Below, piece by piece: positions 12,573-20,309 of a stretch of DNA of 26,321 nucleotides. The number at the start of each line of letters is the position of its first letter. Position 1 is the first letter of the stretch. The DNA is from Piromyces finnis finn. Its lineage: Eukaryota > Fungi > Neocallimastigomycota. The notes beneath the pieces are model-generated. The model had not been told where the DNA came from and searched no databases. It was given only the letters and a program-made list of their open reading frames with translations. Both the position numbers and the translations under genes were made by a program. The stretch spans positions 1 to 26,321 of the forward strand of contig MCFH01000143.1 in the NCBI GenBank assembly GCA_002104945.1. The letters are read 5' to 3'.

Positions 12573-13781
12573 ATGGTTGAACAATGGAGAGCTAATGTTG
12601 CTTATGCCCCAGCAGGTACTAAAGTTGAATATCAAGGTATTATTTATGAACTTATTCAACCCCACACTTCTCAAATAACTTGGGAACCAGGTATGGTTCC
12701 AGCACTTTGGAGAGTTTGTCGTAACCAATCTGGTGCTTCTAATCATCATAGACGTCATTCTAGTTGTTCTTCATGTTCCTCTGATCATGGTCATGGCCAT
12801 GGCGGTCATAATAACCATCATAATGAACCACACGGAAAACCACAACAACCACAGCAACAATTTGGACTCTTTGGGCAAGGTCAACAACAACAACAACAAC
12901 AATCATCACAACAACAATTTGGACTCTTTGGACAAGGTCAACAACAACCACCATATGGTCAAGGACCACAAGGTTATGGACAAGGTCAACAACAACAACC
13001 ACCATATGGTCAAGGACCACAAGGTTATGGACAAGGTCAACAACAACCACCATATGGTCAATATGGTCAAGGACCACAAGGTTACGGACAAGGTCAACAA
13101 CAACCACCATACGGTCAATATGGTCAAGGACCACAAGGTTACGGACAAGGTCAACAACAACCACCATATGGTCAATATGGTCAAGGACCACAAGGTTTCG
13201 GACAACAGCCTCCATTTGGTGGTTATGGTCAACCATCATATGGTGGTCAATACCCCCCACAACCTTATGGACAAAATTCATATGGTGGTGGACAATATCC
13301 ACCATTCCCACAAGCATTCGGACAATCTTATCAAAATAACTATTCTTTCCCATACCAATGGGTTCGTTGGGCCGGTTACACACCAGAAAATGCCATTGCA
13401 CTTTCTAATAAGAATGGTAAAACCTTTGTTGTTGCTCGTGGTCCAATAGAAGGTGGTCTTCACCCAGGTTATGCGGATCCAAATAATAATAAATGTTTTG
13501 TAGGTTATGGTGGTAAGGAATACATTTTAGATGATTTTGAAGTATTAATTTGTGATTCTTCTCGTTATATGTGGTTACCATGTACCGATCCAAAATCTAT
13601 TGATGGTAAACCAATTATTGGTGGATATGAAAGTGATGGTTTAGAACTCTATGTATGCAAATGTATGCATAAAGGAATTCCATACTTTGGTAAGACAAGT
13701 GCAAGACATAGTTGTGCTAATTTTGCATACAATGAAAAAGAACGTGAATGTACTGACTTTGACGTTTTAGTCTATAAATAA
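12573..13781 (+). CDS. CBM12/ChtBD3-like chitin-binding module + His-rich and Q/G/Y/P repeat linker + 2 DM9 (DUF3421) repeats, 402 aa
   Basis: Residues 1-48 (W..N..Y...V.Y.G..Y..IQPHTS...WEP..VPALW) match the Bacillus circulans ChiA1 chitin-binding domain pattern (LQPHTSLAGWEPSNVPALW). From aa 261 two WV/WL...P.NA...(V)AR...G..HPG...C...YGGKE...FEVL units have the DM9 pattern. Intronless, no hydrophobic signal peptide, biased codon usage (CAA, GGT, CCA). Confidence 0.9.
   Translation: MVEQWRANVAYAPAGTKVEYQGIIYELIQPHTSQITWEPGMVPALWRVCRNQSGASNHHRRHSSCSSCSSDHGHGHGGHNNHHNEPHGKPQQPQQQFGLFGQGQQQQQQQSSQQQFGLFGQGQQQPPYGQGPQGYGQGQQQQPPYGQGPQGYGQGQQQPPYGQYGQGPQGYGQGQQQPPYGQYGQGPQGYGQGQQQPPYGQYGQGPQGFGQQPPFGGYGQPSYGGQYPPQPYGQNSYGGGQYPPFPQAFGQSYQNNYSFPYQWVRWAGYTPENAIALSNKNGKTFVVARGPIEGGLHPGYADPNNNKCFVGYGGKEYILDDFEVLICDSSRYMWLPCTDPKSIDGKPIIGGYESDGLELYVCKCMHKGIPYFGKTSARHSCANFAYNEKERECTDFDVLVYK
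12930..13199 (+). repeat. Coding tandem repeat: 5 units of 48, 51, 57, 57 and 57 bp encoding GQGQQQ(Q)PPYGQ(YGQ)GPQG[YF]
   Basis: Units start at 12930, 12978, 13029, 13086 and 13143. They are preceded by two QFGLFGQGQQQ units. Confidence 0.95.
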
Positions 13782-14338
13782 GGAAAAAGCGATCATTTAA
13801 AATTTTATTAAACGTACATATGAATTTTCAACAAATTAATAGTTTATACCACTTTTAAATTTTCCATCTTTAAAAATTAAATAAATATATTCCCTTTTTT
13901 TTTTTTTTACCAAAAAAAAAAAAAAAAACAACTCTAATATTTACATAAATATTAATGGCCAAACATATTTATTAAGATAATAATAATAATAAAATAACAA
14001 ACTCATTATAGTATAAATAAATAAAAAAATTTTATATACTATTCACATTTCATATTTAATAATTATCTTTTTTAAAAAAAAAAAAAAAAGAGTATTCAAA
14101 TAAAAACAATTCAAAGAAAAATTGTTTAATCAAATTTATTTAATGTGTTTATCATTAATTTATTATAAAATAATGTAAAGATAAAACTTTATACTATTTT
14201 TTATTGTGTATGTAATAATAATAATAATGACATGGTCAATAATATAAGATTCAACTTTTTTTTAATTTAAACACTTTTGTTAAAAAATTTAATAATAATA
14301 AAAAACAATATTATCATTGTATTTCATAGAATTTGTAT

Positions 14339-16952: not shown

Positions 16953-19508
16953 ATAATTAATATTCCCATCCTCTTCCGTTCAACTCCAATTCCATTCAAG
17001 TTTATTCTAAAAAATGAGTTCCATTCTTATTCTTGATAATTCTTTTTAAGAAGAAAAAATAAAATCTCTCATTTTTAATCTTTTATTATAAATGAATAAA
17101 TAACAATAATAATAATAATAATAATATATCCTTATGGTTAATTTTCCAAAAAAAAGCCTTTTCAAAAATCATTATTTCTTTATGGTAGTAATGTGTAAAT
17201 AATTAAAAAAAAAAAAAAAAAAAAGTTATAATAAACAAAAGAAGGCATAGTAATAATAAAAAAAAAAAAAAAAAAAGAATTAAAAAAATTTTTTTTCTTT
17301 AATTGTACATATATATAATTAAATAATCAAATTTCTTATTATTCCACTATTATTAAATTTTCTTGTAAAAGTAATACATTTTAAAACAATAAAAAAAAAA
17401 CCATTTCATAATATTAAAAGTAAAAATTGTGTTTTTTTTTTCATCCTTGTTTATTTAAGTTATTAAAGTGTAAGTAGTCAAAATTTTATGGTAATTTTTT
17501 ATATTCTTTTTTTTTTTTTTTTTTTTTTGATATATGTATTGTTGGTTATTATACACACAAATAAAAAAAAAACAAATAGACTTTATTTTTCCCTTCAAGG
17601 ATATAACAAATATCATAAATCATAATAAATTGATATTATTTTAGTAATGTAAAAAGAAATCATTTTATAAAAACATTATAGGCATAATTCTTTATGTTGT
17701 TATAAACTATAAAATGAATGTAATATATTTCCTTTTTTTTTTATTTCATCCCATCTAATAAGAATTTTTCTATAAACAATAACTATCTTGATTGCTATTA
17801 CAACTACAATAGTATTATTATTCTCTTTTAAATAATAAATAAGAAAAAAAGCTATTAACAAAAAATAATTTATCCATTTTTAAAAGATCCCTTTTTTAAA
17901 AAAGAAAACCAACTATTTTGTTTAAGCCAAAGGCATTTTAATGTTCACTTTTTTTTTTACATATTTATTAACTTTTCTATTAACTTATCTATTGACTTTT
18001 ATTTATCAAATTTATTTAATTTTTATTAATTTATTTATTTAATTATTTATCCCCATTTTTTAAATTAAAAAAGTATTTTTCAAAGTTAAATCATAAGGCA
18101 ATACAACCCAAAAAGTAAACAAAACATTAATAAAAATAAATAAAACTAATATTTTTTTATTATTATATAGATAAAACTTTTTTTTTTCCATCCTTTAACC
18201 ACTCTTTCATTAGTTGACAGCAAGAAAACCACCACCACCACCATCACCACTTTCAACCTTTAATTATTATTATTCCTAGCCCTATTTGACTTTGGATATA
18301 AATGAACAAAATTATATTTATTTTAATAAATATTTTATCAATATATAAATGGATAAAAGTATCTATTTAAATAATTCATTTTGTCCCTAAATTAAATTTT
18401 TAATTATTTTATTTATCAAAGAAATTAAAAGAATTTTTTTATTTAATTATAATTTCCTTAAACGGTAAAATATGACATTATTTATTTTACAATACAAAAT
18501 GAATTACATTCATAATAAATTATATTCTATTGAATAGTATATAATAAAGATCATTCTAACATATAATAATAAATGATTTATTCAACATAAAAAAAGATAA
18601 ATCACATCACTCTATTATATAACAAATTAATTAATGCTAAAAGTAGTAAAGTAGTATATAATATAATAATAATGTAATGGTGTATAATATATTTTAATTG
18701 TAATATTTTAATTACAATATATTAGTGATTTATTTTATTTTAATAGTGCCATTTTTAATATATTAGTATTGTATTGTAAAACGTATCACGTAATATTATT
18801 CATTAAATTTTATTATTTATTAAAATAAATTATTCCATATATTATCAATAATAATGTTTCTTCTTTTTTATATTAAATAAGATTTAATATCATTATTAAT
18901 TTCTTACATTAAATGGATTATTTTTATAAGAAAAGCCATCACCATCTTCAAACGCTATATATTATCAATAGTATTGCAGAATAATAAAATATATAAAGAA
19001 ATTAAATTATCAATATAAATAATATTTTATTTATTTATTAATTAATAATAAATAATAACAAGAGATATTAAATAGTTATTTATTTATTAATATAATATTC
19101 ATTTATTCATTTTAATTACTATTATTTATTTAATTTCTATTTATTTATACATTTATTAATTATTACCATTTTGAAAATTGATACCACCACAAATATAAAT
19201 GATCAAATAATAAAGAAAGAATTACCTCTTTTTTTAATTAATTATTAATTAATTTTTATTAAAAAATTCTAAAACTATAAAATAAACGATTTTTTCCTTT
19301 TTTATTTTTAATCTTTACAAGTTTTTTTATATTATTAAAGGTAAATAAAAAGTAAAAAAAAAAAAATTAATAATTAAAAATTTAATTATACTATAATATA
19401 ATTAAAAAATATTTATATTTAAATATTTATTTATATATAATATTTGTTCTTTGCATTTGACAGACTTTTGATTTTTAGATTTTTAAAACAAAAAAACATT
19501 TAATCAAG

Positions 19509-20309
19509 ATGGGAGAACAATGGAGAGCTAATGTTTCTTACGGTCCAGCCGGTACCAGAGTTGAATACGAAGGTACTGTCTATGAACTTATTCAACCACA
19601 CACTTCTCAAATTGGTTGGGAACCAACTATGACTCCAGCTCTTTGGAGAGTTGCTCGTCACCAAGATGGAGGTCACTCTGAACACCACTCTTCTGGTCAT
19701 CACTCTGAACACCATTCCTCTGGTCATCACTCTGAACACCATTCTTCTGGTCATCACTCTGAACATCACGAACAACAACAACAACAACAACAACAACAAC
19801 CACAATTCCAACAACCACCACAACAACAATTCCAACAACAACAACAATTCCAACAACAAAATGTTTCTAACACTCCACCATACCAATGGGTTTCCTTCAA
19901 CGGTACTTTCCCACAAAATGTTGTCAGTGAAAGTAACAAGCTCGGTAAGACTTTTGTTGTTGCTCGTGCTGAAGTCAGAGGTGGAAAGCACCCAGGTTAC
20001 GCTGATATGAGAAACAAGAACTGTTACACTTCTTACGGTGGTGAAGAAGTTGAATCCAAGAACTACGAAGTTTTAGTTTGTGAACCAGGTAGATACTCTT
20101 GGGTTAACTGCAACAACCCAGCTAATATTAACGGTAACCCAATTCAAGGTGGTCACGAAAGCGACAATACTCCACTTTACGTTGTCAAGGTTGAACGTGA
20201 TGGTGTTCCATACTTTGGTAAGACTTCTCCAAAGTCTAGCGCTGCTTACTACGGTTTCGACCGTAAGGAACGTAAGGAAAACAACTTCCAAGTTTTAGTT
20301 TTCCATTAA
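19509..20309 (+). CDS. CBM12/ChtBD3-like module + His-repeat/polyQ linker + 2 DM9 repeats, 266 aa
   Basis: Contains VYELIQPHTSQIGWEPTMTPALW and, from aa 125, YQWV...PQNVV...VARAEVRGGKHPG...SYGGEE...YEVL. Paralogue of the 12573 and 16296 genes. Confidence 0.9.
   Translation: MGEQWRANVSYGPAGTRVEYEGTVYELIQPHTSQIGWEPTMTPALWRVARHQDGGHSEHHSSGHHSEHHSSGHHSEHHSSGHHSEHHEQQQQQQQQQPQFQQPPQQQFQQQQQFQQQNVSNTPPYQWVSFNGTFPQNVVSESNKLGKTFVVARAEVRGGKHPGYADMRNKNCYTSYGGEEVESKNYEVLVCEPGRYSWVNCNNPANINGNPIQGGHESDNTPLYVVKVERDGVPYFGKTSPKSSAAYYGFDRKERKENNFQVLVFH
19674..19772 (+). repeat. Coding 27-bp tandem repeat (HSEHHSSGH) x3 plus a partial unit, followed by CAA-rich polyQ to about 19860
   Basis: Units start at 19674, 19701, 19728 and 19755 (cactctgaacaccaytcytctggtcat). 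Confidence 0.95.

Follow-up and report, generated by a model that had tools for sequence, protein, structure and literature searches.

The 26,321-nucleotide stretch of DNA analysed here (the window) is an entire contig of the anaerobic gut fungus Piromyces finnis (MCFH01000143.1; C50, positions 1-26321, in our genome scan). It carries a tandem trio of genes, A, B and C, for proteins that join a carbohydrate-binding module (CBM) of the CBM_5_12 type to a pair of DM9 domains. The three open reading frames (ORFs) share one orientation, are intronless and encode 402, 218 and 266 residues, each with an N-terminal CBM_5_12, a linker and a C-terminal DM9 pair (Table 1). As far as we have seen, and judging by sequence, the family joins two known carbohydrate-binding modules in a new combination and is apparently restricted to Piromyces-like gut fungi. 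We tentatively read the proteins as leaderless, two-headed glycan-binding adaptors or cross-linkers, with CBM12 on chitin and DM9 on a second ligand, and give this reading a probability of about 45%.

Architecture of the trio

A first-pass annotation of the window had described three co-oriented paralogues with a common N-terminal module, paired DM9 domains at the C-terminus and no catalytic domain. The ORFs and Pfam matches bear this description out: both CBM_5_12 and DM9 lie above the gathering score in all three proteins, and no catalytic domain is among their Pfam matches. In a three-protein alignment, the heads are conserved and the linkers cannot be aligned. The linkers were said to be 212, 29 and 76 residues long with unrelated compositions. 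The compositions are indeed mutually unrelated (Q/G/P/Y-rich in A, charged in B, His/Gln-rich in C), and the lengths were recounted as 211, 28 and 75, a one-residue difference in the boundary. No Pfam match to an aerolysin/ETX_MTX2 pore-forming domain was found in the trio at E up to 1, and the DM9 pair forms the end of each protein.

The CBM_5_12 head resembles the chitin-binding domain of chitinase A1

Pfam CBM_5_12 (PF02839) matches residues 4-47 with E-values of 3e-12 (A), 1.5e-10 (B) and 4.5e-13 (C), and scores of 41-49 bits in all three proteins against a cut-off of 26.2. In a six-frame scan of the genome, the trio modules score 43.8-51.8 bits. The best match in the PDB is 1ED7, the chitin-binding domain of Bacillus circulans chitinase A1 (ChiA1; E 1.7e-10, 23/44 residues identical), and the module is therefore of the ChiA1 type already recognised in the first-pass annotation, including the Trp of its WEP motif. 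The Trp of GWEP and the motifs QPHTS and PALW align with 1ED7 and are invariant in all nine family CBMs, which come from three genomes or metagenomes. The GWEP Trp corresponds to W687 of ChiA1, the residue on which chitin binding by that enzyme depends; Ferrandon and colleagues reportedly found in 2003 that mutation of W687 abolishes chitin binding. The module lacks Cys in every family member and is disulfide-free like that of ChiA1. Given these likenesses, the CBM head should bind chitin via its exposed Trp.

The setting of the module differs from that in ChiA1. There it is appended to the C-terminus of a secreted GH18 enzyme, whereas the fungal module stands at the extreme N-terminus of a non-catalytic protein. 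CBM5/12 modules usually ride on secreted enzymes, and the trio has neither a catalytic domain nor a leader. The absence of disulfides may matter here. Hevein-type CBM18 modules need disulfides and the secretory pathway, whereas a CBM without disulfides could fold in the cytosol and suit a leaderless protein, and this may be the reason why a ChiA1-type module was recruited. In a census of carbohydrate-active enzymes, CBM12 is merely listed among the chitin-binding modules, and CBM18 is abundant, with 288 genes in P. finnis (PMC6004548).

The DM9 head keeps one sugar site and has a remodelled second one

Pfam DM9 (PF11901) matches the C-terminal part with E-values of 3e-25 (A), 2e-29 (B) and 1e-23 (C), at 83-102 bits against a cut-off of 26.2 and over profile positions 2-115 of 115. 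A PDB sequence search with the DM9 region returned only the oyster lectin CGL1/CgDM9CP-1 (deposited as "Natterin-3"; E ~1e-9). An AlphaFold2 model of the gene B protein, made with a 23-sequence alignment, has predicted local distance difference test (pLDDT) values above 90 over the DM9 pair (residues 80-218). Foldseek matched this model to CGL1 (5ID8) with E 5e-10, a target-normalised template-modelling (TM) score of 0.83, a root-mean-square deviation of 2.7 Å and 29% identity.

The sugar contacts of CGL1 were mapped onto the fungal family through the PDB phmmer alignment, and conservation was assessed over 23 family sequences. Site A of CGL1 comprises Asp22, Lys43, Glu59, the backbone of Ala127, His52 and Phe126, and the weaker site B comprises Lys114, Glu130, the backbone of Ala56, Phe55 and Tyr123 (PMC4932603). 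In CgDM9CP-1, the mutations D22A and K43A each abolish the binding of mannose and microbial wall polymers (PMC5712788). In the fungal family, an invariant Tyr, that of HPGY(A)D, takes the place of Lys43 (23/23 sequences), and Asp22 corresponds to Ala or Ser beside a conserved Asn; Glu59 is retained. Site B is fully retained: the Lys of GKT and the Glu of G-K-E are invariant in the 23 sequences, and aromatic residues occupy both stacking positions. The Cys residues of the fungal DM9 domain are not conserved.

As judged from profile and alignment, the trio proteins are genuine DM9 pairs in which the mannose-specificity pocket of the only characterised relative is remodelled. The first-pass annotation had pictured a bridge between chitin and mannan, and its mannan-binding half has lost ground: since Lys43 and Asp22 are both replaced and site B, the weaker of the two, is the only one retained, the case for mannan binding is less strong than had been assumed. 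The DM9 ligand is probably a glycan by this comparison, and not necessarily mannose. The oyster protein (Crassostrea gigas; 5ID8, 5MH1) and the fungal proteins thus have in common the two-repeat DM9 fold, the lack of a leader, Glu59 and the site B contacts. They differ at site A and in the N-terminal CBM5/12 and linker that the fungal proteins add. Natterin-type proteins likewise combine a DM9 lectin head with a second functional module, which there is an aerolysin/ETX_MTX2 pore former, whereas the partner in the fungal proteins is a second carbohydrate binder and not a toxin.

The proteins lack a signal peptide

No hydrophobic stretch was found in the trio proteins. Averaged over 12 residues, Kyte-Doolittle hydropathy peaks at 0.38 in the N-terminal 41 residues; averaged over 19 residues, it never exceeds 0.60 along the full proteins. 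In-frame stops precede the ATG in genes A, B and C, and the absence of a signal peptide noted in the first-pass annotation stands. The start is also conserved: in nearly all 19 clusters of the family, the protein begins M-G-(E/D)-x-W, with the Met three residues before the CBM, and the two exceptions have Q-rich, non-hydrophobic N-terminal extensions of 16-22 residues. The JGI/NCBI gene models of Piromyces sp. E2 begin at the same Met. One homologue (P0006) is present on six contigs from six samples, 955-1010 nucleotides long, which start up to ~63 nucleotides upstream of the ATG and contain an in-frame stop three codons before it and no upstream ATG. This pattern is that expected of assembled mRNAs and therefore also argues for expression. 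Together, the upstream in-frame stops and the lack of an upstream ATG make a missed leader exon unlikely.

The first-pass annotation had taken the missing leader to suggest a cytosolic or unconventionally secreted protein. Among DM9 proteins the lack of a leader is normal: native CGL1 is N-acetylated at Ala2 (PMC4932603), and in the oyster DM9CP-6 is found in the cytoplasm (PMC12379375). The Met-Gly start was considered as a possible N-myristoylation site and rejected, as Glu follows the Gly, Arg occupies a position where the N-myristoyltransferase consensus calls for a small residue, and gene A starts with Met-Val.

The trio is conserved in synteny and under purifying selection

Piromyces sp. 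E2 has the same trio on contig KZ150878, in the same order and orientation, with a spacing of ~3.5 kb and proteins of 424, 222 and 264 residues. Genes B and C are also adjacent on a metagenome contig of 7.8 kb. In a maximum-likelihood tree of the DM9 domains, the three orthogroups are supported at 100/100 (A), 94/93 (B) and 100/98 (C). The linker type is kept within each orthogroup: an RRxSS/CxxC cluster followed by a Q/N/G/P/Y-rich stretch in A, the motif QEGV.[FH][RK]RQDEE in B, and HHSS/HHSD repeats followed by polyQ in C. Duplication and linker specialisation therefore came before the two Piromyces species diverged. In the comparison of P. finnis with E2, the ratio of nonsynonymous to synonymous substitution rates (dN/dS) ranges from 0.14 to 0.51 in the CBM and from 0.20 to 0.46 in DM9, and gene A has 0.16 and 0.20, respectively. 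Both domains stay below 1, and the trio genes are under constraint. The linkers are just 50-68% identical at the protein level in the same comparison.

Two further observations concern these genes. In group A, RRxSS (a site like that of protein kinase A, PKA) and CxxC/Cys-Ser clusters directly follow the CBM (window 12717-12800) and are kept in three orthologues, in an otherwise low-complexity linker. In E2, the trio lies ~10 kb downstream of a non-ribosomal peptide synthetase gene with Condensation, AMP-binding and PP-binding domains (L026:1-257, minus strand, KZ150878).

Distribution and origin of the two modules

The genome scan covered 56,455,805 bases on 232 contigs (56 Mb). The window sequence is also present on contig C177 (~310000-336400), and three stretches of 3.4-3.7 kb (10.5 kb in all) compared between the two copies show 0 mismatches and only small indels. 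Since they differ by indels only, C50 is redundant in the assembly, and only one real trio is present in the genome; a second trio was considered and rejected on the same ground, and the duplication is probably assembly redundancy. In the whole genome, no CBM_5_12 match outside the trio and its duplicate contig exceeds the cut-off. A sub-threshold CBM match on C169 (24.5 bits) was dismissed, as it lies outside any convincing ORF.

DM9 occurs in the genome only in the trio and in one CBM-less paralogue on C68 (C68:791358-791834, minus strand; L007:1495-2442, minus strand; 315 residues). Proteins of this type have a Gly-rich N-terminus of PHGGPGGF repeats, an acidic stretch, a transmembrane-like segment (LLIGGAILGGLWIM), KKKKRVKK and then the DM9 pair. 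By the positive-inside rule, the transmembrane-like segment and its KKKKRVKK flank would place this DM9 pair on the cytosolic side. The CBM-less paralogue is kept in Anaeromyces robustus (P0022, a hypothetical protein) and in a metagenome (P0021), and it joins the DM9 tree next to orthogroup C (95/94). Homologues came from Piromyces sp. E2, A. robustus and metagenome or Logan sequences. Among the named genomes matched, the CBM-DM9 architecture was found in Piromyces species only, and A. robustus showed just the CBM-less paralogue.

For the CBM, an exhaustive search of 1.84 billion representatives with a profile of the family module gave 2080 proteins at E up to 0.001, and the best 150 of these were re-scored per domain: four family representatives and 146 outsiders. 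Within this best-150 set, the family CBMs score at least 99 bits vs 58 bits for the best outside domain, and DM9 was found in none of the 146 outsiders, only in the four family representatives. The nearest outside CBMs in the set are 55-67% identical, and their host proteins carry an M23 peptidase, GH18, fn3 or multiple CBM copies. On all three of the outside-CBM contigs that were checked, sigma-70 factor and response regulator genes are neighbours, and genes are packed tightly or overlap, which marks these contigs as bacterial. The nearest outside relatives of the fungal module are thus bacterial multi-CBM5/12 proteins such as an M23 peptidase-CBM protein (P0039) and a GH18 protein with three CBMs (P0036), which differ from the trio in having 2-5 CBM copies, enzymatic partners and secretion signals. 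As the 44-residue CBM is too short for a meaningful phylogeny, its origin was judged by score gaps and gene contexts. Within this genome the module is confined to the trio, and the closest outside relatives checked are surrounded by bacterial genes, in agreement with the bacterial character proposed in the first-pass annotation, and a bacterial-type origin of the module seems reasonably probable from these comparisons.

Two other searches added little. Patterns drawn from the CBM alignment gave no confirmed match in bacterial genomes, the patterns being too family-specific, and word-index searches with the CBM or DM9 alone returned nearly all family members and were uninformative on distant relatives. 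In the word-index search, which is not exhaustive, the best non-fungal DM9 match (P0023) was bacterial, secreted and composed of four DM9 domains. This protein has 315 residues and a signal peptide, and its gene (L040:5001-5948, plus strand) has a hybrid histidine kinase gene and the gene of a dockerin-domain protein in its vicinity. The DM9 half could conceivably have come from a bacterial donor. The large ESM Atlas clusters contain DM9 with other partners in arthropods, chordates, Basidiomycota and Actinomycetota, and none of them combines it with CBM5/12. The CBM-DM9 fusion may have happened a single time, when a CBM of bacterial type was joined to an existing DM9 gene in the Piromyces-like lineage, with tandem duplication afterwards.

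Our literature search found no published account of a CBM5/12-DM9 architecture. The suggestion that the architecture is undescribed holds in this sense, but the proteins have not gone wholly unnoticed, since NCBI automatically named the E2 orthologues "carbohydrate-binding module family 12 protein". The only paper found to join DM9 and Neocallimastigomycota concerned natterin-gene transfer into a coral, and DM9 is unmentioned in two gut-fungus surveys of horizontal transfer or lineage-specific domains.

Possible functions of the CBM12-DM9 proteins

Under the reading that we prefer, the trio would encode non-catalytic proteins with two carbohydrate-binding heads, made in the cytosol. In the DM9 head, site B would serve as a canonical sugar pocket (Lys, Glu and two aromatics), with site A remodelled around the invariant Tyr. 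The paralogue-specific linkers would set the spacing and reach of the two heads, and possibly regulation or self-assembly. The proteins may then link chitin to a second ligand, by tethering or cross-linking, at any place where chitin is accessible, either in the fungus's own wall after non-classical export or upon wounding or lysis. The roles put forward in the first-pass annotation, namely the sensing of wall or vacuole damage, recognition of fungal non-self and a part in encystment, are conjectural.

Several points weigh against this picture. Fungal chitin is extracellular, and it is not obvious what resident ligand a chitin-binding protein would meet in the cytosol. The RRxS sites, the polyQ and the variable Cys are compatible with proteins that never leave the cell. 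With Lys43 replaced, binding by the DM9 head may be weak, or directed at another ligand or a protein. The next Foldseek match after CGL1 is MFP2, a cytosolic motility protein of nematodes, which shares the fold. Lastly, the CBM part of the gene B model is predicted with only moderate confidence (pLDDT 54-68).

A somewhat unlikely alternative is that the proteins are stored cytoplasmic defence lectins, similar to CGL2, which act when the fungus is eaten or lysed, on glycans of rumen ciliates or competing fungi; the tandem duplication and linker divergence would then reflect a diversifying defence gene family. Chitin is not known to be exposed on rumen ciliates, which counts against such a target. 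The trio does have the form of leaderless, non-catalytic, multivalent lectins in a tandem paralogue cluster. Cytoplasmic fungal lectins are documented as anti-predator toxins (PMC2798750, PMC6238071), DM9 proteins of animals take part in the recognition and agglutination of microbes (PMC5712788, PMC12379375), and natterin-type toxins have DM9 as their lectin head (PMC8402412). The Coprinopsis galectin CGL2 is likewise a leaderless, non-catalytic and multivalent fungal lectin, but it has an unrelated fold, comes from fruiting bodies of Dikarya and has shown toxicity, whereas the trio comes from a chytrid-like gut fungus. Further against a defence role, the Pfam matches of the trio include no toxin or pore-forming domain, and the low dN/dS and stable 1:1 orthologues give no sign of an arms race in the binding domains.

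We regard as unlikely an intracellular role unrelated to lectin activity, in which the DM9 pair is a protein- or membrane-interaction module, as the MFP2 fold is in the nematode sperm cytoskeleton. CBM5/12 would then act on a non-chitin ligand, or on nascent chitin or chito-oligomers where chitin synthase or chitosomes face the cytosol, and the linkers would mediate phosphoregulation or condensate formation. The invariant Tyr in place of the essential CGL1 Lys43 agrees with such a role, as do the fold match to MFP2 together with faint Pfam MFP2b matches, the predicted cytosolic DM9 of the CBM-less paralogue, the unconserved DM9 Cys residues and the group A linkers with their PKA-like RRxSS, CxxC and polyQ/prion-like composition. 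However, the full CGL1 sugar-contact set is retained at site B, and the CBM keeps all hallmarks of a chitin binder including the key Trp.

More speculatively, and with a rather low probability in our estimate, the trio could form a lineage-specific system for cytosolic chitin surveillance or wound sealing, for which CBM12 was chosen because it folds in the reducing cytosol. The re-specified DM9 pair and CBM12 would detect or plug sites where wall chitin meets cytoplasm in an aseptate fungus, such as those of rhizoid breakage, zoospore release, encystment or invading mycoparasites, and the prion-like, His-rich and phosphorylatable linkers would provide three differently triggered modes of assembly.

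Finally, ordinary secreted wall proteins, with a signal peptide in a missed upstream exon or behind an alternative start, are very improbable: CBM5/12 is usually found on secreted proteins, the nearest bacterial relatives look secreted and multi-domain, and introns are possible in gut-fungus genes, but the conserved Met close to the CBM, the Q-rich nature of both extensions, the stops before each window gene, the mRNA-like contigs and the E2 gene models all point the other way.

Other features of the window

The window is very AT-rich (12-34% GC). A dictyostelid source, which this composition had brought to mind, was rejected because the homologues belong to Piromyces and Anaeromyces. A long trinucleotide microsatellite of the TAT/ATT type lies between genes A and B (14277-14880) and reads as poly-Tyr/Ile/Leu/Asn across frames. 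Downstream of the trio, a 534-residue ORF (23378-24982, plus strand) contains an Exo_endo_phos domain (E 8.7e-7) and is likely a non-LTR retroelement endonuclease; upstream of it lies a 263-residue Asn/Ser-rich ORF (21166-21957, plus strand) with no Pfam match.

Table 1. The three CBM12-DM9 genes and their parts, in window coordinates (aa, amino acids).
Feature	Position	Strand	Basis
Gene A, 402 aa (CBM_5_12, long linker, DM9 pair)	12573-13781	+	ORF, Pfam, E2 orthologue P0010
Gene A CBM_5_12 module, ChiA1-type, no Cys	12582-12710	+	Pfam, 1ED7 alignment
Gene A linker, ~211 aa: basic RRxSS/CxxC cluster, then Q/G/P/Y-rich low-complexity	12717-13349	+	Alignment; same type in P0010, P0035
Gene A DM9 pair	13350-13778	+	Pfam DM9 E 3.4e-25; genome scan 13410-13748
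Gene B, 218 aa (CBM_5_12, short charged linker, DM9 pair)	16296-16952	+	ORF, Pfam; orthologues P0016 (E2), P0011-13
Gene B CBM_5_12 module	16308-16436	+	Pfam, genome scan
Gene B linker, ~28 aa, charged; QEGV..RRQDEE motif kept in orthologues	16440-16523	+	Alignment
Gene B DM9 pair, CGL1-like fold	16524-16949	+	phmmer vs PDB, CGL1 E ~1e-9; Foldseek 5ID8
Gene C, 266 aa (CBM_5_12, His-repeat/polyQ linker, DM9 pair)	19509-20309	+	ORF, Pfam; orthologues L026:19159-19953 (E2), L033:6049-6885
Gene C CBM_5_12 module	19518-19646	+	Pfam, genome scan
Gene C linker, ~75 aa: (HHSxxH) histidine repeats, then polyQ	19653-19877	+	Alignment
Gene C DM9 pair	19878-20306	+	Pfam DM9 E 1.4e-23; genome scan 19944-20276

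Significance

Anaerobic gut fungi play an important part in breaking down plant fibre, and little of their cell biology has been explored. The wall-binding proteins known from them are secreted and use disulfide-rich CBM18 modules. The conserved, leaderless family described here unites the only CBM12 modules of the genome with DM9 lectins and suggests an unstudied kind of chitin handling, possibly in wall cross-linking, damage response or defence. It would also be a clear-cut case of a eukaryotic lectin that gained a bacterial-type module by fusion. With three natural linkers on similar heads, the family is a ready set for studying how linker chemistry tunes bivalent lectins, and its invariant Lys-to-Tyr change allows the sugar specificity of DM9 to be tested on a natural variant.

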